Translations under genes and position numbers: made by a program | The notes under the pieces: model-generated | What the model was told of the DNA's origin: nothing | Seen by the model: the letters and a program-made list of their open reading frames with translations, nothing else | Databases searched by the model: none | Source of the DNA: Podarcis melisellensis | Taxonomy: Eukaryota | Direction: 5' to 3' (one strand) | NCBI GenBank assembly: GCA_964234715.1 | Contig: OZ174289.1 | DNA length: 64,000 nt | Part shown: positions 3,650 to 50,295 of the stretch, piece after piece | Layout: every line of letters starts with the position of its first letter | Numbering within the stretch: the first letter of the stretch is position 1

Positions 3650-4092
3650 TTGGTTTTTCAAATTAGAATTTTACAGTCTTGTGTCCAATTTACAACATAA
3701 AAACAAGATTCCAAAGAATCTCTTGGACTTCCCTCCTCCCTTTGTGGGCCCTCTTGTTAATCATTTCCTCCTGCATCTTTTATGATAATCCAAAATCTTT
3801 TGTGTCCAAAATTCACCATTAAACTACAAGTGATATTCCAATCCCACTAACGATTTTAACTGCTTACAATGGTTTGTAAAATAAGTTATAATCTTTCCCC
3901 ATTCCTTATTAAAATTTCGGTCTTCCTGATTTCTTATTCTTCTGGTCATTTTGGCCATTTCAGCATAATCCATCAACTTGATCTGCCATTCTTCTCTGGT
4001 AGGGACTTTATCTTCTTTCCATCTCTGGACCAATAACATCTGCACGGCTGTGGTCGTATACATAAATACTCTTATCTGCTCCCTTGGGATTT
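3650..4092 (-). mobile_element. L1-clade LINE 3' fragment in the MARS2 intron
   Basis: Minus-strand translation MYTTTA..WKEDKVPTREEWQIKLMDYAEMAK matches the ORF2 C-termini of the other L1 copies in this window. Confidence 0.8.
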
Positions 4093-4366
4093 CAGCATGG
4101 GGGGAATATAAATGTAATGAGATGTGGGCGAACTTCTGGCCTTGCAGATGTTGTTGGACTCTAATTCCCATCAGCCCCAGCCAGCATAGTTTGGGCTGAT
4201 GGGAGTTGTACTTATGAACTATAAAGGGCAATGGGAGTAATAGTCCAGCAATATCTGGAAGGCCAAATGTTCCATCATAGATGCAATGAATATAAACAAA
4301 TAAATAACTATTTGTAGGGGAGACAGCAAAAAAAAGGTTGTGACCAGTTTCTCTCTTGCATCTCAG

Positions 4367-7859: not shown

Positions 7860-10800
7860 GTTGTTGTTGTTTAGTCGTTTAGTCGTGTCCGACTCTTCGT
7901 GACCCCATGGACCAGAGCATGCCAGGCTCTTCTGTCTTCCACCGCTTCCCGCAGTTTGGTCAAACTCATGTTGGTAGCTTCGAGAACACTATCCAACCAT
8001 CTCGTCCTCTGTCGTCCCCTTCTCCTTGTGCCCTCCATCTTTTCCAGCATCAGGGTCTTTACCAGGGAGTCTTCTCTTCTCATGAGGTGGCCAAAGTATT
8101 GGAGCCTCAGCTTCACGATCTGTCCTTCCAGTGCGCACTCAGGGCTGATTTCCTTAAGAGTGGATAGGTTTGATCTTCTTGCAGTCCATGGGACTCTCAA
8201 GAGTCTCCTCCAGCACCATAATTCAAAAGCATCAATTCTTCGGCGATCAGCCTTCTTTATGGTCCAGCTTTCACTTCCATACATCACTACTGGGAAGACC
8301 ATAGCTTTTACTATACAGACCTTTGTCGGCAAGGTGATGTCTCTACTTTTTAAGATGCTGTCTAGGTTTGTCATTGCTTTTCTCCCAAGAAGCAGGTGTC
8401 TTTTAATTTTGTGGCTGCTGTCACCATCTGCAGTGATCAAGGAGCCCAAGAAAGTAAAATCTCTCACTGCCTCCATTTCTTCCCCTTCTATTTGGCAGGA
8501 GGTGATGGGACCAGTGGCCATGATCTTCGTTTTTTTGACGTTGATGTTGAGCTTCAGACCATATTTTGCACTCTCCTCTTTCACCCTCAATAAAATATTC
8601 TTTAATTCCTCCTCACTTTCTGCCATCAAGGTTGTTGATATTTCTTCCGGCAATCTTAATTCTGGCTAGGGATTCATCCAGCCCAGCCTTTCGCATGATG
8701 AATTCTGCATATGTTAAATAAGCAGGGAGACAATATACAGCCTTGTCATACTCCTTTCCCACTTTTGAACAATCAGTTGTTCCATATCCAGTTCTAACTG
8801 TAGCTTCTTGTCCCACATAGAGATTTCTCAGGGGACAGATGAAGTAATCAGGCACTCCCATTTCTTTAAGAACTTGCCATAGTTTGCCGTGGTCGACACA
8901 GTCAAAGGCTTTTGCATAGTCAATGAAGCAGAAGTAGATGTCTTTCTGGAACTCTCTAGCTTTCTCCATAATCCAGCACATGTTTGCAATTTGGTCTCTG
9001 GTTCCTCTGCCTCTTCTAAATCCAGCTTGCACTTCTGGGACTTCTCAGTCCACATACTGCTTGAGCCTCCCTTGTAGAATTTTAAGCATAACCTTGCTAG
9101 CCTGTGAAATGAGTCCAATTGTGCGGTAGTTGGAGCATTCTTTGGCACTGCCCTTCTTTGGGATTGGGATGTAGACTGATCTTCTCCAATCCTCTGGCCA
9201 CTGCTGAGTTTTCCAGACTTGCTGGCATACTGAGTGTAGCACTTTAACAGCATCATCTTTTAAAATTTTAAATAGTTCAGCTGGAATACCATCACTTCCA
9301 CTGGCCTTGTTATTTGCACTGCTTTCTAAGGCCCATTTGCCTTCACTTCTGGCTCAAGGTCAGCAACCACACTACCTGGGGTGTACGAGCCATTCATATC
9401 CTTCTGGTATAATTCCTCTGTGTATTCTTGCCACCTCTTCTTGATGTCTTCTGCTTCTGTTAGGTCCTTACTACTTTTGTCCTTTATTATGGTAATCTTT
9501 GTACGAAATGTTCCTTTCATATGTCCAATTTTCTTGAACAGATCTCTGGTTCTTCCCATTCTGTTGTTTTCCTCTATTTGCATTGCTCGTTTAAGAAGGC
9601 CTTCTTGTCTCTCCTTGCTATTTTTTTGGAAATCTGCATTAAATTTCCTGTATCTTTCACGATCTCTCTCGCATTTTGCTTGCCTTCTCTCCCCCGCTAT
9701 TTGTAAGGCCTCGTTGGACAGCCACTTTGCTTTCTTGCATTTCCTTTTCATTGGGATAGTTTTCGTTGCTGCCTCCTGTATAATGTTACGGGCCTCCATC
9801 CATAGTTCTTCAGGCACTCTGTCCAGCAAATCTAAATCCTTAAACCTGTTCCTCACTTCCACTGTGTATTCATAAGGGATTTGATTTAGATTGTATCTTA
9901 CCGGCCCAGTGGTTTTTCCTACTTTCTTCAGTTTAAGCTTGAATTTTGCTATAAGAAGCTGATGATCTGAGCCACAGTCAGCTCCAGGTCTTGTTTTTGC
10001 TGACTGTCTAGAGCTTTTCCATCTTTGGCTGCAGAGAATATAATCTATCTGATTTCGATGATGCCCATCTGGTGATGTCCATGTGTAGAGTCGTCTCTTG
10101 TGTTGTTGGAAAAGCGTGTTTGTGGTGACCATCTTGTTCTCTTGACAGAACTCTATTAGCTTTTCCCCTTCTTCGTTTTGATCTCCAAGGCCAAACTTGC
10201 CAGTTGTTCCTTTTATCTCTTGATTCCCTACTTTAGGATTCCAATCCCCTATAATGAGAAGAACATCCTTCTTTGGTGTCACTTCTATAAGGTGTTATAA
10301 GTCTTCATAGAATTGGTCAATTTCAGTTTCTTCAGCACTAGTAGTTGGTGCATAAACTTGGATTACTGTGATGTTAAAAGGTCTGCCTTGGATTCATATC
10401 GAGATGATTCTATCATTTTTGAGATTGCATCCCAGTACAGCTTTCGCCACTCTTTTGTTGACTATGAGGGCCACTCCATTTCTTTTACGGGTTTCTTGCC
10501 CACAGTAGTAGATATGATGGTCATCTGAACTGAATTTGCCCATTCCCGTCCATTTTAGTTCACTAATGCCCAGGATGTAAATATTTATTCTTGCCATCTC
10601 ATTTTTGACCACATCCAACTTGCCTAGGTTCATGGTTCTTACATTCCAGGTTCCTATGCAATATTTTTCTTTACAGCATTGGACTTTCCTTTCACTTCCA
10701 GGCATATCCGCAACTGAGCGTCCTTTCAGCTTTGGCTCAGCCGCTTCATCAGCTCTGAATCTACTTGTACTTGTCCTCCGCTCTTCCTCAGTAGCATGTT

Positions 10801-13879: not shown

Positions 13880-14276
13880 AGCGCAACACAAGGCGCCGGT
13901 GGGGTGCTGCTAAGGTTCCGCCTTTGGGGCTGTGCCCTGGAAGCCGGCTGGGTGTCGGCAGCCAATGGAAACGCGGAGCGATGGGCGGCTCCTGGCCGGT
14001 GACTCGAGGGTGCTCCCGCAGCTGCGACTCATTGCTTAAATGCGGCTGGCTGGACCGTCAGCTTGGAGTCTTGTAGGCAGGGAGCTGTGTTTCGCCCCGG
14101 TCGCCATGCCGGCCGTACTGAGCCAACCCTGAGCTTTTCCGTCGAGTCCTGCCTTCGTTGGGTTTGCTTATTTGTTCCTTTTGCGCGGCGCGTTCCTCCC
14201 GCTCTCGCGCTACGGAAAAGCCGAGCCTTATCCTCGCCTAGCCTGCTAGCCAGCGCCGACGGCGTGTCCTTCCAGA
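13880..14276 (+). promoter_or_regulatory. CpG-rich promoter / 5'UTR of RAB33A
   Basis: Sharp rise in CpG density immediately upstream of the RAB33A ATG, with CCAAT at about 13962-13966. Confidence 0.65.
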
Positions 14277-14471
14277 ATGGAGCTGGAAGCCTCGATGGAG
14301 CAGTCCGTTCAGACGCGCATCTTCAAGATCATCGTCATTGGCGACTCCAACGTGGGCAAGACCTGCCTGACTGTGCGCTTCTGCGGGGGAGCCTTCCCGG
14401 CAAACACCGAAGCCACCATCGGCGTGGACTTCAGGGAGAAGGCGGTGGAGATCGAGGGAGAGCACATCAAG
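14277..14471 (+). CDS. RAB33A: Rab33A GTPase, coding exon 1
   Basis: [29 protein letters not shown] (P-loop) ... TIGVDFREK ... HIK. Donor AAG|gtacag at 14471/14472. 65 codons. Confidence 0.93.
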
Positions 14472-16139
14472 GTACAGCAGGAAGAAAAGCAGGGAGGGAA
14501 GAGGGAGAGAGCGGGGGAGCCGGGCCTGGTGCACACAGCCTTTTCTGGGAGCCGGGTTCTCCTTCCAGGTGGCCTCGTCTGTTGTTATCGGGGTGTTTTT
14601 TTAAGCAACCATAATTGAGGATGCTGCTTCTGAAAGCTCCGCTCGTCTTCTATTGCTGCCATGTCTGAAAGGATGTAGGGCGCCCCACGGAGGTGAGGAG
14701 AGCTGGGGAGCAAAAAATCGATGGACTCCCAGAGAAGCAGGCTATAGAACCCTGTTTGGTCTTGGGAGAGTAACGGGAAACCAGTATAAGACAGGCTTGG
14801 GGAGGAGGAGCAACAGTAGGCAATCTACCCTGAACTGCAAGCTTCTTAAGGCACAGCGTGTAAGGTGTATATATTTTGTCTAATCCAAATCCTGGTGCTG
14901 TTCTCCTCACCACCATTTTAATATGCTCACAAAAACCCTATTGGGTGGGAAATGATGAAGGAGGGAGAGACAGCAAAACGAGGACTGGCCCAGTAAACTT
15001 AATGGCTAAGTAAGGATTTGAAGGGCCGTAAATCTGTGGTAGAGCTCCTGCTTTGCATGCAGAAGGTCCCAGGTTCAATCCTTGATAAAGCTGGAAGAAA
15101 GAACCCTGCCTGCAACCCTGGATAGGCTCTGCTATTCAGTATAGACAGACCAATGGCTGAGTGTGTTGCATGTATATTCTCCCTAACTACTTACATCATT
15201 CTGGCTCCAGGTTCTTCTGAAGGTTGGGGTATTAATTTCACAGTGGCTAATTTCTAAAATTACAAGTGTTTTAGGGCTCCACAGTGTCTGGAAGTCAAGT
15301 GTGGTGGAAGCATTCCCTGTCCCTCACCCCCAACTTGGCAACTCCCGATTGCTAAAGCTTGTTGTGATGCCCTATAGTGGCAAGAGAAAAAGAGGGCCAG
15401 GCCATAGTGCTCACTGCATTTACATCACTTCATTACTCAACTACTTGATGACTTGCATCTGTGAACTGACACCCTCCTCCCCTGTTATGCCTGATATGAA
15501 AGTTCTGGCTTCAGTGCTGGAATCTGTGATGGCCTTTTCCTACAGGCAGTTCACTACCATGTCCATAATCAATTGGCATGCATGAATGAACCAGCCTCCA
15601 TAACTGTACTGTGCTCAGATGCTCTGTTCTTTATGGCTACTTCACATGTTTCACTAAGCAAACACCTCCTTCCCAGTAGAATGGACAAGGTGTGGGGGAG
15701 ATACACTGGTAGAAGGGGGAGGTATGAGCAGGGCCAAGATTTCAGTGCATTCTCACAGTCACATCACAGCCCAGAAACTGTACTCAGCCCCTGGTGCTTC
15801 TGTTATGCAGACTTCTGTTGAGGTCTCTGTGTGATTGCACAAGGACTACCTATACTGTGGGATTCTGATGCTGTTATTAACTCTGGATGTTTTAGTTTTG
15901 GATCACTTTTGCACACCAGGAATTAAGGACTGGATATATGTGTCCTGGTTCAGTCATCTCTGCTACATCCTTGTAATGTTAGGCCAATCGAGAGCACACA
16001 TATTGACATTGGGGATGGGAGAAGAAAGATATAAAATCCAGAATATTTAGATATCATAAAATCGGCATCTGCAGAAGTGTTCAGATTGCTCAGTTACTGT
16101 AAATTCCAGGGCAAAGTATACATTACATACTAATGCCAT

Positions 16140-16350: not shown

Positions 16351-18454
16351 CCCCCCCCCCTCTTTTTCCAGTATTTTTTTATTATTTTCCTTATTCATAC
16401 TTTAACAATACAATACAGTAAATCATATAATTACTTTAGCTCTGCCAAGCTCACAACTTCCCATCCACTGAAGGGATACTTAAGCGAGTATCCCTTATTT
16501 TCTTATATTGCATATTCTATTTATTTAATCTTATATCTGCTATACATTGTAAGAGCTATTTCAATCCTGCCAGTGTTTTTAAAGTTTTACAATTGCCTTT
16601 TGTATACACCATAAATTTACTCCAACTTTCTTGAAACCTCTGGTCATCCTGGTCCCAAATTCTTCCCATCAGTTTGGCTAACTCTGCATAACTCATCATT
16701 TTCGTCTGCCACTCCGCAATGGTAGGGACTTCTTGCACTTTCCAGTTTGGGGCAAGCATATTTCTTGCTGCAGCTGTGGCATACATAAAGAATCTTTGGT
16801 CTACTTTATTAATTTATTTCACCATCAAACCCAACAAAAAGGCTTCTGGTTTTTTGGGGAAAGTGTACTTAAATATTTTCTTAAGTTCATTATAAATTAG
16901 CTCCCAAAAGTTCTTAACTTTATCACAAGTCCACCACATATGATAGAAATCTCCATCCACCTCTTTGCACTTCCAACATTTTTTATCCTTCATCCTGTAC
17001 ATTTTTGCCAGCTTTACCGCTGTTAAATGCCACCTATAGATCATTTTCATTAGGTTTTCTTTTAAAGCCGTACATGCCGTAAATTTCATATTTACCTTCC
17101 ACAACTCATACCATGCATCCAATTCAATATTATGCCCAAAATCTATAGCCCGTTTTATCATTGCTTCTTTCATTTCCTCATCTTTTGTAAACCATTCTAA
17201 TAACAAATCATACATTTTGGATAATGTTTTACCTCTGCCTTCTATTAAGTCTATTTGAAATCTTGATTTTTTTTGTCTTCAAACCCAGCTTTCTTTGTGT
17301 CATCCTTCAGTATATCATTAAGCTGATGGTATTGCAGCCAACCTGTAAGCATACCTTCTCTTTGATCATATGGCTTAAGTTTTATCCCTTGTTCCATTTT
17401 TCTAGTAATTTTTCTAGTACCGGTAATTTCTTCTTTCCCTCCATGTTAACTTTCTTGATGGTCAACACTTCTATTGGCGATATCCATCATGGGGTTTTCC
17501 TTTCCAATAATTTTTTTATTTCTTTCCCACACCTCATAGATTGACCTTCTTATCATATGGTTTAAAAAACCTTTATGGACCTTTATTTTATCATAACACA
17601 GGTATGAGTGCCACCCGTACCTGTTATCATGCCCTTCTAAATCCAAAAGGTCTGTGTTTTCCAGTGTTATCCATTCTTTTAGCCATACAAGACAGGACAC
17701 TTCATAATAGAGATTCATGTCTGGTAGGGCAAATCTGCCTCTTTCTTTTTTATCTATCAAAATTTTCATTTTAATCCTCGGCTTCTTTCCCTGCCAGACA
17801 AATCTCGACAGTATTTTTTGCCACTCTCTACATTGTCCTGTCCCCTTAATCACTGGAATTGTTTGGAACAAGAATAACATTCTAGGTAAAACATTCATCT
17901 TAATCACCAATATTCTGCCCAGGAAAGAGAGTTTCAGCCTATCCCAAATTTCTAGATCTTTCTTAAACTCTCTCCATGTAGTTTCATAATCATCTTTATA
18001 CAAATTTATATTTTTTGTTGTCAACCATATTCTGAGGTATTTCACTTTCTTAGTCACCATGATTCCTGTCTCCTGTTGCAATTCCTCTGTCTCTTCTTTG
18101 TTCATGTTTTTAACTAACATTATTGGTCTTTTCTCAAAGGTATGGAAGCCATATATCTAGAACAAAAGCCAAACTTATTATAAATAATAATTTGTCGGAC
18201 ACTTTTGAAATTTCCAAGGGGAGCAGACAGGGGTCTCCCCTGTCACCTTTGGTGTTTATTACAGCTTTGGAAGTTCTAAATAAGAATTTGAGAGAAACAT
18301 CAGAAATTAGAGGGGTTAGGGTGGGAGTAAAAGAGTTTAAAATAAAAGTGTTTGCTGTCGATCTAGTTATAACATTAGAAGATCCAAAGAAAAGTGTACA
18401 AGAAGCCCTGCAGAAAATAGAGGAATTTGGCAAAGTGGTGGGGTTTAAACTTAA
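16351..18454 (-). mobile_element. L1-clade LINE, 5'-truncated with an inverted 5' segment
   Basis: ORF2 C-terminal half on the minus strand (about 16556-18135) and RT motifs KGSRQGSPLSP..FAVDL..GFKLN on the plus strand (about 18135-18454). 16-bp TSD tatactaacctttctc at 16335-16350 and 18455-18470. Confidence 0.9.
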
Positions 18455-21215: not shown

Positions 21216-21814
21216 GAGGCTGAACATTTTCTGTCAGCTGTTAAAAGATTCTAGCATTTCCTTCAGAGCTCATTTGCCCTGGTTCCTGTCTTGGGTGCGT
21301 ACATGCGCGCTCGCGCGCGCACACACACACACAGTGGCTGGGTCTGTGAGCTTCCTTGTTAGCTTTCCCACAGTGCCTCTGGCATTGCTTGGCTCCATAC
21401 CATTATACAAAATAAAAAGACAACAGTACAGCATGGGCATTGTGGGAATTTGTTTCAGTGGCAACTTGTAGCTGCCTGCTGCCTCAGATGGGTGAGTCCA
21501 GAGCCTGCCAAAAGCACTTTACTGAGGGCCTTCATATGAGCATAGATAACTGCCCTATATACCCAGTCAGACCATTGGTCCTTCCAGTTCAATATTATCA
21601 ACAAAGACTGGGAGCAACACTTGAGGATTTAGGCAGGAGACATTCCAAGCTCCACCTGTAATTGAACCAGGGATTGTCTACAGGCAAAGCAGGTGCTCAT
21701 ACCTTGATCTTTGGATCTTCCTCCATGTCGACCCTTAATGCTGGATCTGATCCTGCATGAATGTACTCTCTACCTGGTTTGTAGACTCTTCAGAAATTCT
21801 GCTCTGTTCCACAG

Positions 21815-22270
21815 GTGCAGGTCTGGGACACAGCAGGCCAGGAAAGGTTCCGGAAGAGCATGGTGGAGCACTACTACCGCAATGTGCATGCTGTTGTCTT
21901 CGTCTATGATGTCACCAAGATGGCTTCCTTCATCAATCTTAAGACCTGGATTGAGGAGTGCAATGGCCATGCAGTCCCTGCCCTTGTCCCTAAAGTGCTT
22001 GTGGGAAACAAGTGTGACTTGCGGGACCAGATCCAGGTGCCATCCAGCATGGCCCTGAAGTTTGCTGATGCACATAATATGCTTTTGTTTGAAACCTCAG
22101 CCAAGGACCCCAAAGAAAGTCAGAATGTGGAATCTATTTTCATGTGTCTGGCTTGCCGGCTGAAGGCCCAGAAGTCTCTACTTTATCGGGATATGGAGAA
22201 GCAGCAGGGGAAGGCACCGAGAATGACGCTTAATGCAGACGGGAGCAGCAAAAACCCTTGTCCCTGCTGA
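21815..22270 (+). CDS. RAB33A: Rab33A GTPase, coding exon 2 (terminal)
   Basis: Acceptor ttccacag|[54 protein letters not shown] is RAB33A-type, with a C-terminal CPC prenylation motif. TGA at 22268-22270. Confidence 0.96.
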
Positions 22271-25612: not shown

Positions 25613-27960
25613 TGACACTAAACTCCCATCAGTACCTGCCAGCATAGCCAATGGTGAGGAATAATGGGGTGCCAGACAAAGCTTTCTGGGAAGGCTGTAC
25701 CATAACCAGGATGCCACTCCCTGGTGTACTCCCTGATGCAGCCTTTCCCAACCTTGGGTCCGCAGATGTTGTTGGACCACAGTTCCCAACATTTCTGCCC
25801 ATCGAGCCACGCTTTCTGGGATAATGGGAGCTTTAGTCCAGCAATATACGGAGACCCAAAGTTGGGAAAGGTGTGGGAGAGGTTGTCTTGGGAAAAGGCA
25901 TCTCAGGGGCATCTTTCAGCCCCTGCAGCTTTGCTTCCTGATACCACACTGCAATAGGCCAGAAGCCAAATAAGCCCAGTGTGGTAGTTGTTTATAAGGG
26001 AGAGATAAATGTTTAGAAATGGACCAACACTTATCAGGCAATGGTGATGTCATTGCCTGCTGAAAAGTAATTAGCTGGCTCTTTATGAGGCTGGTTGCTG
26101 TTGCTCACACCTCTTTGCTTCCTTCCTACTCACACCAGCTAGAAATGCCAAAGGAGTTCTTTAAGCCAGCAGGACAATGTTGTTTCTTTTACAAACATTT
26201 GTACAGTGCTTAGATCATTAAAAAGATGCTGAACTATAAAAACACAGTTTGTTGGTGTCATAAATTGCAGGACAAGGTCTTCAGTGCTCCCATTCCAATC
26301 TGGTTAAAGTAGTAGTCTTCAACTTTTTCAGACCCAGGACCCACCCAACATGCCTTTGAGGACCCACTTCTTATTCTGATTTCTATAGTATACCATAATT
26401 GGAGCAGGGAGGTAGTGCTGCTGTCATTACCCACACCACCTTAGATCAGGCTATGACCCAGTAGTTGAGTTGAAGGACCAGTGAATTAAATAATGCTTAC
26501 AGTAATTCACAAAAGCTACTAGTCTACAATTATTAGCTGGGTGCAACATGTAGCTAGCCCTCTAAGTGTCCCTATTTTCCAGGGACAGTCGCAGATTAAC
26601 ATAAGCCATCCCGGTTTCTGATTTTACTCTGAAATGTCCCGCTTTTATTTAGAAAGTCTCTATTTTCATCAAATAAATGTTGGTGCATATGATAGAATGT
26701 CCCTATTTTCATCAGAAAAATGCTGAAGAGTATGGAGTTATGTGACCCCAAGCCAAGGAGATAAGTAACTATTAATATAGAAACTAGGAGTGGTTGGCTT
26801 TTTTTGCCCAACTCTGCAAGGGACTGAGTCCCCTAAGCCCGGAAACTTATGTCCTCACTGTTGAAAGATGTGTGGATCCAGAATTGACCTCCACAGTCGC
26901 TTACAAACACACTGTTAAGTCAATGTTCATGGAAGACAATCTTACTCACCAAAGAAGAATAAGGTGATCAGCCAGAGATGAATGGATGGAGGCAGGATAG
27001 TGAAAGTAAGGCAGATCTTAATTTTTCTGTTGCAACAGAGTTCCCTCCCCTCCTTGCAAGGAGGTAATAGAGACCCAGAACAAAGTGTGCAGGAACCTTC
27101 ATTATCATTATATATAAATTTTATTAATTTTCCAATAAAAACAAATTTATAACATTATTAAACATCAAAAACTCATCACACATCTTTTTTTCTTTTAGAC
27201 TTCCATCAACATGTCTGATAATTTTCCGTAATTATCACAAATCTTCACATTTCTTAATTTATATTGCACTATATATATCTTATCTTACCATGTTGTTTAA
27301 ACAATATTTCTACCAAATCTTCTTACAGAGCTTCTTGAAAACTTACAAACGTTATATCATTATCACAAATATTTTTAATATATTCTGTAAATTTACTCCA
27401 GTCCTCAGTGAATCTTTGGTCTCGTCGGTTGCGAATCCTCCCTGTCAATCTGTCCAGTTCCGCGTAATCCATTAATTTCGATCTCCATTCTTCAATCGTA
27501 GGCATTTCTTCTTGTTTCCATTTCTGGGCCAAAAGAGTTCTGGCTGCTGTTACTGCATACAGAAATACTTTCTGATTGTTTCTTTTTATTTCACCACCTA
27601 GTATTCCTAATAGAAATGTTTCTGGTTTTTTAACAAATGTATATTTCAGTATTTTCATTATCTCATTATATATCATTTCCCAGAAGCACTTCATTTTTTT
27701 ACATTCCCACCACATATGATAAAATGTCCCTTCTTTCTCCTTACATTTCCAACATTTATTACTCACCTTATACATCTTACTTAATTTAACTGGTGTTATA
27801 TACCATCGATATATCATTTTCATAACATTTTCTTTAATTGTGGTACATGCCGTAAATCTCATCCCTTCCTTCCACAATTTTATCCAATCTTCAAATTGAA
27901 TGTTATATCCAAAGTCTTTGGCCCATTGAATCATAACTGATTTAACCTCTTCCTCCTTCA

Positions 27961-29270
27961 TTTTTTTTAAAATAATATTTATTCAAAGTTACAAAAAAGA
28001 GAAAAGGAAAAAAAGCAATACAAAATACAAAGAAAAATAATACAACAATAACAGAAAAAGAAAAAAAGAGAAAAAGGTATAAAAATACATTCACTTAAAA
28101 TAGAAAAAGAACAGATTAAACCTTTACAAATTTTCTTCCTTTACTTGTTTCCTTGACCTCCTCATACCTCCCAATTTTGTATTCTAGTTCCAATCGTTTT
28201 TTCAGCAAATCCTTCCAACCTTATTTTCATTTAAATAATTTAATTTAATATATTATAATTTAACGTCCTCTCTTTCGTCAATTTCGTCAACTCATTTTTA
28301 TTTAATCCTTTATATCATATCTACCAAAACTACCTAATTTTCTTTTCCCAACATCTTTCTAACAGTCCTTAACTTTACAATATTTTTGAAGATATACTTT
28401 AAATTTTTTTCCAATCTTCTTCCACCGACTCTTCCCCTTGGTCCCGGATTCTGCCAGTCATCTCAGCCAATTCCATATAGTGCATCACTTTCGTCTGCCA
28501 TTCTTCTCGGGTGGGTAATTCTTGTGTCTTCCAATACTTTCCAATGAGTATTCTCGCTGCTGTGGTGGCGTACATAAAAATGGTTCTATCCTCCCTTCGC
28601 ACCAATTGGCCGACCATGCCCAGGAGAAAGGCCTCTGGTTTCTTCTGGAAGGTATATTTAAATACCTTTTTCATTTCATTATAAATCATCTCCCAGAAAG
28701 CCTTAATCCTTGGGCATGTCCACCAAAGGTGAAAGAATGTGCCCTCAGTCTCTTTACATTTCCAACATTTATTATCGGGCAGATGATAAATTTTAGCCAG
28801 CTTGACTGGGGTTAAGTACCACCTGTAAATCATTTTCATTATATTCTCTCTTAAGGCATTACAAGCCGTAAACTTAATACCTGTGGTCCATAACTTTCCC
28901 CAGTCAGCCATCATAATGTTGTGTCCAAAATCTTGTGCCCATTTAATCATAACAGATTTAACCGTTTCATCTTGTGTATTCCATTTCAACAGCAAATTAT
29001 ACATTCTTGATAAATTCTTGATTTTAGGATCTAACAATTCTGTTTCCAATTTTGATTTTTCCACCTGAAAACCAATTTTCTTATCTAAATTATAAACCTC
29101 CCTTATTTGATAGTAGTGAAGCCAGTCTCTTACTTTAGTTTTTAAACTGTCAAAGCTCTGCAGCTTTAATCTATCTCCATCTTGTTCCAAAATTTCCCAA
29201 TATTTTGGCCAATTTGTCTCCATATTAATGTTTTTCAGAGCCTTGGCCTCCACTGGTGACAGCCACCTTG
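27961..29270 (-). mobile_element. L1-clade LINE (inner copy, 5'-truncated) inserted into another L1
   Basis: Open 284-aa ORF2 C-terminus with CWKC..H..W.C knuckle, 3'UTR and poly(T) at 27961-27968. TSD ttc[c/a]tccttca at 27950-27960 and 29271-29281. Confidence 0.88.
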
Positions 29271-33994: not shown

Positions 33995-34500
33995 ACCATG
34001 TCGGGAAACAGCGGGAGGGCGCGCTGCGCCTCTCCCGCTGTCTCCCGAGTTTGCAGGGCTGGCGATGGGGAGGAGCAGGCTCCCCCCCCCAGCCTTCTAG
34101 CCAAGTCGGGGGACAGCGGGAAGGGCGCGCTACGCCTCTCCCGCTGTCTCCCGAGTTTGCGGGGCTGGCGATGGGGAGGAGCAGGCTTCTCCCCCCCGCC
34201 AGCCTTCTAGCCAAGTCGGGAGACAGCGGGAACGGCGCGCTGCGCCTCTCCCGCTGTCTCCCGAGTTTGCGGAGCTGGCGACGGGGAGGAGCAGGCTTCT
34301 CCCCCCCGCCAGCCTTCTAGCCAAGTCGGGAGACAGCGGGAACGGCGCGCTGCGCCTCTCCCGCTGTCTCCCGAGTTTGCGGAGCTGGCGACGGGGAGGA
34401 GCAGGCTTCTCCCCCCGCCAGCCTTCTAACCAAGTCGGGGGACAGCGGGATGGCGGCGTTCCGCCTCCCCGCTGTCCCCCGAGCTTGTGGGGTTAGCGGT
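33995..34500 (+). repeat. About 110-bp GC-rich minisatellite (about 4.5 units)
   Basis: ccaagtcggg unit starts at 34101, 34211, 34321 and 34430. Confidence 0.92.
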
Positions 34501-35190
34501 GGGGCTCTCCAGCTTCAGCGAAAGCCTGCATTCGCACCATAGGACGCACACACATTTCCCCTTCATTTTTGGAGGGGAAAAAGTGCGTCCTATGGTGCGA
34601 AAAATACGGTAATCCTTTTTTGTATTTAAATTTTTATTAGTTATCCAAATTTTAACAAATCAATCCTAATTGTTTAAACATTTTAAAAAAATAATTAGGT
34701 TTCCTGCTCCTGTGCAAACATATGTCCAATTCCTCCAGTTGTTGCCTTCTTCATTCTTCTTATTTAATCATCTTCTCACCCTTCTATTCATTTTAATTCA
34801 TTTACATAGCTAGCCGCTCTTGTTGCCTTACAATCAGCTCCTCTGTTATTTCCCAAACACATAAATGTCCGTGAGCAGCCTTTCAGGCACTCTTCTCAGG
34901 TCTGGTGTGAAGAGAGATTAACTGCCATCATTTATTGTCCATTCAACATTCCATTTCTTTGAGAACTCCTTTGAAGGCATCCCTTTTGACTTCCCTCCCC
35001 CACATTGTGGATATTAATGAAATGATTTTCCCCACTCTGTATCTCTATCACAACTATTTTTATAAATCCTTTGTCAATCCATAGTTCAAATTTTTACTAC
35101 AGATTTTCTGTCAATCCTAACAATGTATGTAATTAAAAAAAAAAAAAATTCCTTCCAGTAGCACCTTAAAGACCAACTAAGTTAGTTCTT

Positions 35191-35230
35191 GGTATGAGCT
35201 TTCGTGTGCATGCACACTTCTTCAGATACC
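35191..35230 (-). ncRNA. Minimal type-I hammerhead ribozyme, copy A
   Basis: Minus strand reads GGUAU-CUGAAGA-A-GUGUGCAUGCACAC-GAAA-GC-UC-AUACC: 5-bp stem I, CUGANGA core, palindromic stem II, GAAA, minimal palindromic stem III (AGCU) and UC cleavage site. Confidence 0.8.
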
Positions 35231-35381
35231 TGGTGAGGTTGATGGACTTCCATTTCATGCGGCTCAATGTGGTGCCTTCCATAGTTCCAGTTACAGATAG
35301 GTAGCCGTGTTGGTCTGCCATAGTCAAAACAAAAAAAAATTCCTTCCAGTAGCACCTTAAAGACCAACTAAGTTAGTTCTT

Positions 35382-35421
35382 GGTATGAGCTTTCATGTGC
35401 ATGCACACTTCTTCAGATACC
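35382..35421 (-). ncRNA. Minimal type-I hammerhead ribozyme, copy B
   Basis: Same as copy A except one C>U change that turns the basal pair of stem II into G-U. Confidence 0.75.
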
Positions 35422-36113
35422 CAACACGGCTACCTATCTGTAAATGTATGTAATTGTTCACAATAGCTTTTCAAATAAATTATAAACTTTCCCCATTCTT
35501 TATTAAAGACTTCTTCCTGGTTTCTAATTTTTTCTGTAAGTTTTGACATCTCAGCATAGTTCATCAGTTTTGTCTGCCACTCTTCTTTGGTCGGTGTTGT
35601 ACCATCTTTCCATTTCTGGGCTAAGAGAGTGTGCACAGCCGTGGTCACATACATAGTTTTGTCTAGCCCATTGGGATCTCTGGTCCTATAATACCTAAAA
35701 GAAAAGCTTCTGGTTTCTTAGGAAAAGTTATTTTCAACATTTTTTTCAGTTCATTATATATCATTTCCCAGAGGTCTTTTAAAACATTTATGGTGCGGTC
35801 TACTCAGAAGTAAGCACCATCGAATTCAATATGACTTATCCACACTTCCTTTTGTTCTGCTGCTTTCTCCTGGGGAAAGCCATTCTTTATAGTGCTTGAT
35901 GATCACAATTCAGGTTTTCTTCAGATTGATGTTCACTCCAATTTAGAATTAAAAGAGAGTGTTTACCCTGGGAAAGGAGCAGGGCAAGGGGAAAGCCGCT
36001 CGGACCCATCCATAAACAGCACAGGGCAAGCAGAAAACTACTTGGACCCGTGCTTTCTAGATATGGGACATGAAATTAATGGACAAGGCTGAGTTAGGTC
36101 CATTAATTAATAG

Positions 36114-37448: not shown

Positions 37449-38008
37449 GTAACATCTACGTGTGTGTCTGAAAATTGTCTGTTTGAAACTCCTAAGTCTA
37501 GAAATATGAGCCAGCTTTTGATTCCTAGAAATGACTAGTGCGCAAGTGACAAAGCATGGTGGAAAGTCCAAAGTTATGTCATCTTCCCTGCCTTTCTTGA
37601 GTTATAGTATGCATTTTACCTGACTAGGTGTGAAATATCTGCTAGGATTGTCTAGCCTTTGTTTAACGGGTGGTTTGAGCAGGTGAGGGTGAAGGATGGC
37701 TAGTCTTTATGTGTATTTCTCTTAAACTGTTGCCCTTGATCCTTACAATGTATAATGCAAGGTCAGCAGTAGGGCAGAACTGATACCAAGAATAAAAAGA
37801 GCGAACTGAATTTGGGAAAGATGGGTTTAAAAATGTTTCGTGTCTGATTGTCTTGGGATTGTTAGGGCATATGACACACTAGGAAGAAGAGTTTCCTGGA
37901 GAGATGAAATATTTGGGAATGGTTAGATGAAAGAGCAGAAATAATGAGGACCTTTAGTAGGGATGTGGCAAACCTTTTTGACCTCTGTGTCTTGCTGTTC
38001 GTCTAAAG

Positions 38009-38367
38009 AGAAAAGCAAGAAGAAGAAGAAAGAGAAGAGAGAGCACCGAAAATGCGCGAAAGAGGAACAGCTTGCAGACTCGCCTCCTTCTAAAACCAGG
38101 ATCAAAGTGGAGAAGGAAGACCCAGGGTATGAATGGCATGCCAATGCAAGTCAGCAGACCTGGAGTAGCACATCTGGGCACAAACATGCAAGCAGGGCAC
38201 AACATGAACAGGAGTCTAAGTATGAGCATGTGAGAGTGAGGTCTCGAGACAGAGCCACAGACAGGGACAGGCAAGAACAGAGAACAATCCGCAGTGAGAA
38301 GCACAAGAAGGTAGATACTTCCAAAGAAAGGCCCCGAGCAATAGAAAGCAGAAGATCCCGGGAGTGA
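38009..38367 (+). CDS. RBMX2: RBMX2 terminal coding exon (K/R/S/E-rich tail)
   Basis: The phase-1-compatible acceptor is gtctaaag|AG, giving EKSKKKKKEK...RRSRE*. AATAAA at 38544-38549. The AAG acceptor makes this boundary less certain. Confidence 0.75.
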
Positions 38368-45773: not shown

Positions 45774-45907
45774 NNNNNNNNNNNNNNNNNNNNNNNNNNN
45801 NNNNNNNNNNNNNNNNNNNNNNNNNNNNNNNNNNNNNNNNNNNNNNNNNNNNNNNNNNNNNNNNNNNNNNNNNNNNNNNNNNNNNNNNNNNNNNNNNNNN
45901 NNNNNNN
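45774..45907. other. Assembly gap (134 N)
   Basis: Run of N. Confidence 1.
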
Positions 45908-49472: not shown

Positions 49473-49936
49473 TATTGGTTTCTGCCTTCTCTGTTCAGGT
49501 ATGACTCAACAGCGTGCTGTAGCTCAGTCGGCAGTTATTGAACCCTGGAGAATTGTACCAATCACTGTAGACAATGCTGAGCTAGATGAATGAATGTTTT
49601 GACTATGTATAAGGCAGCTTCCTATGTTGCTTCTAATGCCTTAATAAATTGCTTGGTCTTTAAGGGTGCCACAAGACCCTTAGTTGGTTTTGGTGAAGTG
49701 TGGGAAGCAGATGGGAGAAATACTTATCTGTTTGGATGGCTTAGTTCAGTACAGGCGATACTTGCGCTTTGTAGGAAGAAATAGGTCAGTGAACTTGATT
49801 GCATCCTAGTCAAATATGTAAATTATTACAGAGTGGCTAGTGTTGGCATGGATTTGGGGCAGGGTTGACCAATCAGCATCCTTCTCAGCCCTCACTTTGG
49901 TGTCTGAGCTGAAGTCTCTCTCTCTTTTTCTTATAG

Positions 49937-50084
49937 GGACGTTTCCTGTGGATCTCACCAAAACACGACTTCAAGTCCAAGGCCAAAGCATTGATGCCCG
50001 TTTCCGAGAGATCAAGTATCGGGGCATGTTCCATGCCTTGTTTCGTATCTCCAGGGAAGAAGGCATTCTTGCACTCTACTCTGG
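49937..50084 (+). CDS. SLC25A14: SLC25A14 coding exon 2
   Basis: ttatag|GG..GG|gtaaag. Encodes [22 protein letters not shown] (carrier motif PxDxxKxR). Residues match SLC25A14 rather than SLC25A30. Confidence 0.95.
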
Positions 50085-50295
50085 GTAAAGCGCTGTCCTT
50101 TATGTACAGTAACCACACAATGCTTGAGGCATCTTCCCCATCCTTTAAATTGAGGTTTCAGAACCTGTAGATAGCAAGAGTCAAAACTGTATACTGTAAT
50201 TGGAATGCTAGGAGAACTCAGCCAAAACCCCCCAAGGAGGAGTGATGCTCCTGCTTTGCTGAGTGGAACTTAACTGTCTTCTTCCCCCACCACAG

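Follow-up and report, generated by a model that had tools for sequence, protein, structure and literature searches.

A 308-bp insert in the window, the whole 64,000-nucleotide stretch of Podarcis melisellensis DNA analyzed here (contig OZ174289.1 of GCA_964234715.1), carries two minimal hammerhead ribozyme motifs 191 nt apart on its minus strand. We read it as a young insertion of a short, non-coding hammerhead element into an L1 fragment, made in trans by the reverse transcriptase (RT) and GIY-YIG endonuclease of a Penelope-like element (PLE) and likely inert; we give this reading a probability of roughly three in four. The element is not new as a kind: minimal hammerheads (min-HHRs) were reported from reptile genomes in 2014 (Cervera & de la Pena 2014, PMC4209133), and non-LTR retrozymes with a family mean of 176 bp were found in four of five sampled reptiles (Li et al. 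2026 preprint, doi 10.64898/2026.07.22.740005).

The insert and its target site

The insert (35135-35442, minus strand; GC 41%) lies between two copies of the 13-bp TSD AATGTATGTAATT, at 35122-35134 and 35443-35455, which are identical at all 13 positions. Its boundaries were verified independently by alignment with a paralogous L1 copy at 3793-4093. When the insert and one TSD copy are deleted, the flanks become colinear with this paralog (71% over 306 nt, E=2e-34), which has a single TSD-like 13-mer and spans the junction without a gap. After removal of the insert, the L1 ORF2 frame also continues to its stop (...CEQLHTLLGLTENL*). Thus, the 308-bp insertion with a 13-bp TSD and its location inside an L1, both proposed in an initial annotation of this DNA, are borne out. 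The L1 identity is based on the paralog alignment; neither the tail of L1 ORF2 nor the last host exon, rich in K, R and S, matched a Pfam family.

On the + strand the nick lies in GTAATT^GTTCAC and on the minus strand in ACATT^GTTAGG; both contexts read ATT^GTT, with a TSD of 13 bp. The + strand 3′ end of the left TSD copy (…ATT^) would be the primer for first-strand cDNA, and the minus-strand end of the right copy (…CATT^) would correspond to the second nick. PLE-type integration is marked by an AT-rich target, 5′-ATT-3′ where each strand is cleaved, and a variable TSD. The Anolis Poseidon element (PAc, Poseidon_Ac) cleaves and extends both strands and prefers 5′-ATT-3′ (Frangieh et al. 2024, PMC11167929); an AT-rich target, ATT at both nicks and extension of both strands are common to PAc and the insert. 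The likeness of ATT^GTT to the PAc preference is suggestive, the exact cleaved bond within ATT not being stated in the papers.

The host gene has its exons on the + strand, and one of them matches RRM_1 (E=8e-12). From its protein sequence, alongside the RRM hit, this gene is probably RBMX2. Since the host exons are on the + strand, the minus-strand ribozymes are antisense to the host gene, as had been claimed. No consequence for the host is evident; the insert is intronic, antisense and within an L1 fragment.

Hammerhead motifs and the 191-nt unit

A search string covering 35 of the 40 nt of the full motif occurred exactly twice in the window, on the minus strand at 35382-35416 and 35191-35225, against a chance expectation of none. 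The cut sites, 35387/35386 and 35196/35195, are 191 nt apart; the strand, number and spacing of the motifs first described are thereby confirmed by exact string search. We also built a min-HHR descriptor (CUGANGA, an optional bulge, a stem II of at least 4 bp, GAAA, pairable 15.2/16.2, U, H, and a stem I of at least 4 bp). Within the 64 kb of the window it matched nothing but these two sites, and it had 0 matches in 300 first-order Markov randomisations. With cmscan (Hammerhead_1, _3, _II, HH9 and HH10; E≤10), no hammerhead was reported in 2.5 kb or in the 308-bp insert alone. Rfam hammerhead models expect a closed helix III, so that a miss is expected for a minimal motif lacking one. The cmscan output consisted of weak, unrelated matches only.

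Hammerhead 1, the upstream copy (35382-35421, minus strand; cut at 35387/35386), has the layout GGUAU-CUGAAGA-A-GUGUGCAUGCACAU-GAAA-GC-UC^AUACC; hammerhead 2 lies downstream (35191-35230, minus strand; cut at 35196/35195). In both copies the core is CUGAAGA...GAAA-GC-U-C^, with the conserved C3-U4-G5-A6-N7-G8-A9, G12-A13-A14, A15.1-U16.1 and H17 all present. Helix I (GGUAU:AUACC) is a 5-bp, open type I helix that can be extended no further in either copy. The 14 nt of stem II form a perfect palindrome, with a fold of 5 bp and a CAUG loop; helix III is not closed, the AGCU at 15.2-16.2 being a 4-nt palindrome that permits intermolecular pairing. Every element of the structure first proposed (hammerhead core, 5-bp stem I, palindromic stem II and AGCU stem III) is thus present. 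The two copies differ in sequence at position 11.1: a CpG-to-TpG change in hammerhead 1 gives this copy a G10.1-U11.1 wobble instead of the G10.1-C11.1 pair of the downstream copy. The MFEs are −8.6 kcal/mol for hammerhead 1 and −10.1 kcal/mol for hammerhead 2, both below the −5 kcal/mol cutoff of Li et al.

This motif matches most of the published traits of PLE min-HHRs, and the link to PLEs drawn in the initial annotation holds. The shared traits are (i) type I topology with a CUGANGA/GAAA core and a short helix I, of 4-5 bp in published examples and 5 bp here, in a reptile genome, (ii) a single bulged nucleotide between A9 and 10.1, which in both copies here is an A before GUGUG, (iii) G10.1-C11.1, found in the downstream copy but replaced by G-U in the upstream one, and (iv) an unclosed helix III with a palindromic 15.2-16.2, here the AGCU self-pairing site. 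By contrast, helix II of PLE min-HHRs is described as 6-8 bp, longer than the 5 bp of this palindromic stem, and PLE min-HHRs are associated with a PLE ORF, whereas the present ones are known from an insert without such an ORF. By eye, Poseidon_Ac has the same layout (CUGAGGA-U-stem II-GAAA-CG-UC^), with one bulged nucleotide and a 2-nt palindromic stem III. Its sequence, also compared by eye only, is different, and it is a 2.7-kb element with an RT-EN ORF where the insert has a 191-nt unit without an ORF.

From cut to cut, the unit spans 35196-35386 on the minus strand (GC 43.5%). The insert is made up of a 22-nt inverted fragment and 1.5 direct units, the direct part being 287 nt (1.5 × 191). 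The 91 nt repeated after each hammerhead are 99% identical and one CpG transition apart. At unit positions 48-56 is an internal U9 run (35331-35339, minus strand), the counterpart of a T14 run (35135-35148, minus strand) that terminates the insert at its sense-strand 3′ end and directly abuts the TSD. A putative 40-nt “tail” (35291-35330, minus strand; unit positions 57-96), which includes the AC-rich stretch ACCAACAC, lies between the U-run and the start of the inverted fragment. The other 60 nt of the unit (35231-35290, minus strand), upstream of hammerhead 2, are single copy and inside the TSD-bounded insert, and are presumably a pLTR-derived remnant. It had been considered that the spacer might prove to be flanking DNA. 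The 90-nt spacer is instead element sequence, because it is inside the TSD-bounded insert and is partly repeated in inverted form. A stem-loop predicted around the U-run was no more stable than shuffled sequences (z=−0.35).

The inverted fragment (35422-35442, minus strand; 22 nt with a shared G at 35421) is the reverse complement of unit positions 74-95, and the inverted repeat pair extends over 26 nt with 96% complementarity (E=2.7e-6). With this 22-nt inverted copy at the 5′ end of the insert, the structure is not a plain tandem. The fragment did not figure in the initial annotation.

The position of the insert in an L1-rich intron, together with a homopolymer run at one end and the 26-nt inverted repeat, might point to a SINE mobilised by a LINE, or to a DNA transposon (MITE), in which a hammerhead-like string is present only by chance. 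We regard this as extremely improbable. There is no 3′ poly(A) on either strand, so that the insert is not LINE-mediated; the homopolymer is A at the 5′ end of the + strand and T at the 3′ end of the minus strand. The inverted repeat has one arm inside the insert, at 153 nt from the closer TSD copy, and so is not of the terminal kind. By chance, the full structural motif would be expected essentially never, and four traits of PLE min-HHRs that are not obligatory are reproduced in it. We accordingly rejected a LINE-dependent SINE for want of a 3′ poly(A) and a MITE on account of the internal arm. A pol III SINE was also rejected: no A or B box was seen by eye, and pol III would be stopped by the U9 run within the unit.

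The insert does not code for protein; the AUG in loop II opens a frame of 9 codons at most. A crude motif screen of all ORF pieces of at least 70 aa in the window flagged no RT or GIY-YIG, and together with the lack of coding capacity this argues that the insert is a non-autonomous passenger and not a PLE proper. An exact-product look-up of the two longest incidental ORFs in the unit found nothing on record. There is a second way to derive the insert from a PLE: it could be what is left of a single autonomous PLE (pLTR and ORF start) after heavy rearrangement or internal deletion, and not a separate non-autonomous family, in which case the second hammerhead was gained by template switching in a single integration. 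PLE insertions are often 5′-truncated, tandem or inverted, and complex, and the loop-II AUG is about where the PAc ORF begins relative to its hammerhead. This derivation is nevertheless unlikely, as the 191-nt spacing of the hammerheads leaves no room for an ORF and translation from the loop-II AUG would end after 9 codons. Moreover, the 91 nt that follow each hammerhead are the same bar one CpG change, which is easier to reconcile with a short repeating template than with a single rearrangement event.

No further copies were found in the window by a motif search allowing up to 3 mismatches or by blastn with word size 7. With no second family copy found, the 191-nt unit, the end points at the U-run and “tail,” and the conservation of the core are deduced from one locus. 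Pattern scans of metagenomes, viral contigs and prokaryote genomes gave 0 matches, a result that would be expected of a vertebrate repeat and is uninformative on copy number in the lizard genome, and the motif string had no match in a full-text literature search.

Folding and the retrozyme question

In the initial annotation, the tandem pair was taken to define a retrozyme-like unit, and it was predicted that a transcript would be cleaved at the two sites, with possible circularisation of the product. The operational criterion for a non-LTR retrozyme is a tandem detected by TRF with at least 2 consecutive complete units, each with a type-I HHR (Li et al. 2026). TRF on 34900-35700 with a minimum score of 30 returned 0 rows. 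With only 1.5 units and no TRF array, the locus falls outside this published definition, and the proposed definition of a retrozyme unit by the tandem pair is not upheld.

The insert does share several features with non-LTR retrozymes: a non-coding unit within the 150-450 bp range, one type-I hammerhead per unit, GC below 50% (PMC7229834; doi 10.64898/2026.07.22.740005), a TSD longer than 4 bp (here 13 bp) and a proposed dependence on PLE enzymes. It differs from them in that it is a dispersed, TSD-bounded copy and not a tandem array, and in its inverted fragment; its monomer, too, is not notably structured. The ribozymes differ as well. Retrozymes have a canonical type-I HHR with contacts between the loops of helices I and II and with efficient self-cleavage, whereas the motif here is minimal, with an open helix I that has no loop 1; minimal PLE hammerhead variants have been set apart from the canonical retrozyme HHR (Cervera & de la Pena 2020, PMC7229834).

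Could the locus nonetheless be a working retrozyme, in which a hammerhead dimer cuts minus-strand transcripts of this or sister loci to release a 191-nt circle that serves as a template for rolling-circle reverse transcription? The two complete motifs are co-oriented and one unit apart, each hammerhead has an MFE below −5 kcal/mol, and 191 nt is near the 176-bp mean of reptile retrozymes. An insert of more than one unit is also what would be expected from reverse transcription around a circle, as Cervera and de la Pena proposed for PLEs (PMC4209133). We consider this quite unlikely. The double-hammerhead can be written as a nested structure that is not the MFE, at −17.7 kcal/mol compared with −37.2 kcal/mol for an extended stem-II duplex. 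For RNA of tandem units, the corresponding values are −45.6 kcal/mol and, for the competing fold, −65.8 kcal/mol. The active dimer fold is thus predicted to be about 20 kcal/mol less stable than its alternatives, and the 14-nt palindromic stem II makes for a strong competing intermolecular duplex. In the locus transcript, pairing within the 22-bp inverted repeat crosses the swapped stem I pairs on which the dimer depends, and enforcing AGCU:AGCU pairing gives −64.4 kcal/mol compared with an MFE of −92.4 kcal/mol. The 191-nt monomer (−39 kcal/mol, z=+1.10) is no more structured than shuffled sequences and is not rod-like. Together with the G10.1-U11.1 wobble of the upstream ribozyme, these predictions leave the proposed cutting at both sites and circularisation unsupported.

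Work on related ribozymes also argues against a working retrozyme. The motif is of the minimal PLE type and not the canonical type I of the metazoan retrozymes that form circular RNAs. PLE min-HHRs cleave poorly in vitro, even as dimers (PMC4209133, PMC11167929); dimer cleavage was reported by Lunse et al. 2017, as summarised in PMC6765202. The Anolis Poseidon hammerhead needed its protein, and no Anolis RNA-seq reads ended at the PAc cut site (PMC11167929). No promoter is evident at the present locus, which is antisense within an intron. The ribozymes are of the dimer-dependent, probably protein-assisted PLE type, and self-cleavage releasing a 191-nt RNA at this locus is unlikely.

A related proposal, which we also hold to be improbable, is that of a true amniote retrozyme built on a minimal hammerhead, its RNA being cut with the aid of PLE protein, then circularised and reverse-transcribed around the circle. 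If this were true, the 1.5-unit insert and the second-strand-primed inverted tail would be a genomic footprint of reverse transcription beyond unit length on an RNA circle.

A probable Penelope-type integration footprint

Insertion of a passenger element by PLE enzymes, our preferred reading, draws on the arrangement of the insert as well as on its ribozymes. Published hallmarks of PLE insertions are partial tandems, an adjacent inverted 5′-truncated copy and an optional tail of 30-40 bp (Craig et al. 2021, PMC8557442). The first two, a partial tandem of more than one unit and an inverted 5′-truncated copy at the 5′ end, are both present here. The third has a counterpart, at this one locus only, in the 39-40 nt between two putative cDNA starts: the direct copy ends at the U-run, 56 nt past the cut site, and the inverted piece starts 39-40 nt further on. 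Measured from the cut, the putative starts are at +56 and +95/96.

A similar geometry is known from PAc. Reverse transcription by PAc starts at two internal sites that bound its tail; the cut site is after nt 29 and the tail covers approximately nt 85-119, or +56 to +90 from the cut (PMC11167929). The proximal start of Poseidon_Ac at +56 coincides with the end of the U-run here at +56, and its 34-nt tail (to +90) compares with 39-40 nt (+57 to +95/96) in the insert. Both have an AC-rich stretch near the distal start. The proximal start is placed differently, in an AC-rich loop in Poseidon_Ac and in the U-run here.

On this basis, we propose that integration proceeded as follows. The target would have been nicked on both strands at ATT^GTT, 13 bp apart. 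The 3′-OH of the + strand would then have primed reverse transcription at the U-run, 48-56 nt past the ribozyme cut, and the internal U9 run would accordingly be the proximal start. First-strand synthesis would have run for 1.5 unit lengths. Its template may have been a transcript of tandem units, a circular RNA, or several processed monomers bridged by template jumping, any of which would fit the sequence. The minus-strand 3′-OH would likewise have found a priming site on element RNA, at the far end of the “tail,” 39-40 nt downstream of the first-strand start. The cDNA primed from this second nick would have grown for 22 nt before switching onto the first cDNA at a G/GG microhomology, which would yield the inverted repeat. 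Alternatively, the inverted 22-mer could be intrinsic to the source copy and not made at integration.

Taken by itself the insert is unremarkable; PLE derivatives with hammerheads abound in vertebrates other than mammals and birds. It is an unusually clean natural footprint of PLE integration, with a perfect TSD, an internal divergence of ~1% and an independently verified empty site. Its two cDNA start points, its ATT nicks on the two strands and an inverted piece attributed to second-nick priming match the in vitro behaviour of Poseidon, in an element of different sequence. If borne out genome-wide, this would extend the two-start-site “tail” mechanism to short non-autonomous passengers and would define a minimal cis module for the enzyme, of ~100 nt after the ribozyme.

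Structure of the insert and its host locus

Read along the minus strand, the interval 35122-35455 starts with one copy of a 13-nt direct repeat, then 22 nt and the first 40-nt hammerhead motif (hammerhead 1, 35382-35421), followed by 42 nt, U9, 40 nt, 60 nt, the 40-nt motif again (hammerhead 2, 35191-35230), the 42 nt again, U14 and the 13-nt repeat. A 35-nt core-plus-stem string has exactly two matches in the window, both on the minus strand, with 0 expected by chance. Our own structural descriptor of a minimal type-I hammerhead required CUGANGA and GAAA, at least 4 bp in each of stems I and II, pairable 15.2/16.2, U16.1 and H17, and allowed a bulge ahead of stem II. Across the 64 kb it matched the two insert sites alone, and it had no match in 300 randomised windows. 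The predicted cut sites, 35387/35386 and 35196/35195, are spaced by 191 nt. The 91-nt repeated blocks are identical bar one C/T difference at a CpG and the length of the U-run. The sole difference between the hammerheads is at position 11.1, so that stem II of the upstream copy closes with a G-U pair.

At its 5' end the insert opens with 22 nt (35421-35442) that repeat unit positions 74-95 as their reverse complement (E=2.7e-6), the unit being the 191 nt between cut sites. Thus, rather than a plain 1.6-mer, the insert comprises an inverted fragment and, after it, 1.5 direct units. The initial annotation had described a tandem of hammerhead units, which holds for the two co-oriented motifs 191 nt apart but not for a plain tandem. 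Stem II (35396-35408 / 35204-35216), a perfect palindrome of 14 nt, holds an AUG in the loop, from which the reading frame ends after 9 codons. Because the ORF of the Anolis carolinensis Penelope-like element (PLE) Poseidon_Ac (PAc) begins at stem II (PMC11167929), the loop-II AUG may be what is left of the start codon of the parent element.

With the insert and one repeat copy removed, the flanks are colinear with L1 sequence elsewhere in the window, a paralogous copy at 3793-4093 (E=2e-34) that carries a single TSD-like 13-mer and is gap-free at the junction. This provides independent support for the insertion boundaries, and the feature first described (two motifs, their cut-site spacing and the 13-nt repeats) is real and was accurately observed. 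In the interrupted L1 ORF2 frame, removal of the insert gives eight further codons, then a stop. The window is rich in L1, and ORF2 3'-end fragments paralogous to the host L1 lie at 3793-4093, 16561-16906, 27597-27684 and 28625-28697 (66-78% identity). Exons of the host gene, putatively RBMX2, lie on the plus strand at ~32655, 32901, 36878 (RRM_1, E=8e-12), 37289 and 37963-38367. The insert therefore lies in an intron, and its ribozymes run antisense to the host gene, as originally proposed.

Several other features occur in the window. A GC-rich stretch at 34000-34500 (+) has a ~110-nt repeat with identical weak miRNA-like Rfam matches at 34196-34281 / 34306-34391 and 34217-34263 / 34327-34373. 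The long near-perfect hairpin at 34524-34605 (-) matches the mir-651 model at 33 bits (E=2.7e-4), well short of the gathering score of 106; it probably belongs to a transposon end and not to a miRNA gene. Long ORF pieces at 7874-10294 (-), with endonuclease- and RT-like sequence (e.g. 9329-10294, 322 aa), presumably resemble an RTE/Bov-B-type LINE. Exon-like pieces at 14250-14615, 21785-22267 and 49822-50085 (all +) include one pair with small-GTPase motifs (GDSNVGKT..., WDTAGQERF...) and another piece with a mitochondrial-carrier motif; these suggest putative Rab-like and SLC25-like genes nearby. A run of 134 N occupies 45774-45907.

Hammerhead type and comparison with retrozymes

Rfam hammerhead models gave no match, even when the insert was searched by itself at E<=10, which is consistent with a motif that has no closed helix III. 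Such a minimal hammerhead (min-HHR) of metazoan PLEs was defined by Cervera and de la Pena 2014 (PMC4209133), who also reported it in turtles and snakes. Among the four recurrent traits listed there, none imposed by the published descriptor, are a helix I of 4-5 bp, G10.1-C11.1 and a palindromic 15.2-16.2. Both insert motifs have a 5-bp helix I, a bulged A and GC within AGCU; of the two, the downstream copy has G10.1-C11.1 and the upstream copy G-U. Compared by reading rather than by computed alignment, the PAc consensus has the same layout (CUGAGGA, one bulged U, stem II, GAAA, CG, UC^), spanning the pLTR-ORF junction (PMC11167929). Judged by its sequence, the insert motif fits the definition of a PLE min-HHR and is predicted to work like one.

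The insert resembles non-LTR retrozymes in the size and GC content of its unit and in its TSD. TRF detected no array at the locus and only 1.5 units are present; therefore, the operational retrozyme test failed at this locus. Retrozymes that form circRNA have a canonical hammerhead, whereas the insert does not. Animal retrozymes have been argued to be non-autonomous PLE derivatives, and were found in four of five sampled reptiles (Li et al. 2026 preprint, doi 10.64898/2026.07.22.740005). No family copies beyond the insert were detected in the 64-kb window, and metagenome, viral and prokaryote collections gave 0 matches, none being expected for a vertebrate repeat.

Predicted folding and cleavage

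Each single motif is predicted to fold into stems I and II (-8.6 and -10.1 kcal/mol). The active form would be a double hammerhead in which the stem I strands are swapped and helix III is AGCU:AGCU. We calculated -17.7 kcal/mol for this form, versus -37.2 for the extended duplex formed by way of the palindromic stem II (14 nt). For the tandem RNA, the double-hammerhead fold reached -45.6 versus -65.8 for the competing fold. A 22-bp inverted repeat dominates the fold of the actual insert (z=-3.1) and its pairs cross the swapped stem I pairs; enforcing AGCU:AGCU in the insert gave -64.4 kcal/mol versus an MFE of -92.4. The 191-nt monomer is no more structured than usual (z=+1.1).

Published PLE min-HHRs are poor cleavers, even as dimers (PMC4209133, PMC6765202). 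The PAc ribozyme depends on its protein, with 0 RNA-seq reads ending at the cut site (PMC11167929), and only one of nine Xenopus retrozyme dimers cleaved (Li et al. 2026 preprint). Taken with the modelled fold energies and the inverted repeat, these data make release of a 191-nt RNA from the 35122-35455 locus unlikely. The earlier suggestion of a retrozyme releasing an RNA that might circularise is thus not supported for this copy, which has no TRF array, a non-canonical hammerhead and an unfavourable dimer fold.

A probable footprint of PLE integration

PLE insertions characteristically show partial tandems, an adjoining copy that is inverted and 5'-truncated and, optionally, a "tail" of 30-40 bp (Craig et al. 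2021, PMC8557442). The Anolis PLE enzyme cuts and extends both DNA strands, prefers 5'-ATT-3' and uses two internal RNA start sites for reverse transcription, which bound the tail (Frangieh et al. 2024, PMC11167929). In PAc the RNA is cut after nt 29, placing the tail (~nt 85-119) at +56 to +90 from the cut (PMC11167929). In the insert, the reconstructed target reads ATT^GTT at both inferred nicks. The direct copy terminates in a U-run with an internal counterpart at +48 to +56, and the inverted fragment starts at +95/96, 39-40 nt beyond the U-run. By its structure, the insert carries the hallmarks of a PLE integration product. The PLE link made in the initial annotation is right.

From this one locus, we infer a path of priming and template jumping. 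The plus-strand 3'-OH would prime at the U-run, and 1.5 unit lengths would be copied. The minus-strand 3'-OH would prime on element RNA at the distal end of the tail and 22 nt would be made, after which this minus-strand cDNA would jump to the first cDNA at G/GG microhomology. The 1.5-unit product could have been copied from a tandem transcript, from an RNA circle or from processed monomers between which the enzyme jumped; all three templates would give it.

Two other element types were considered. A LINE-dependent SINE was excluded by the lack of 3' poly(A) on either strand, and a MITE by an inverted repeat with one internal arm.

The insert has no ORF and is thus a non-autonomous passenger. 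It is mainly of value as a natural, clean footprint of PLE reverse transcription from two sites and on two strands.
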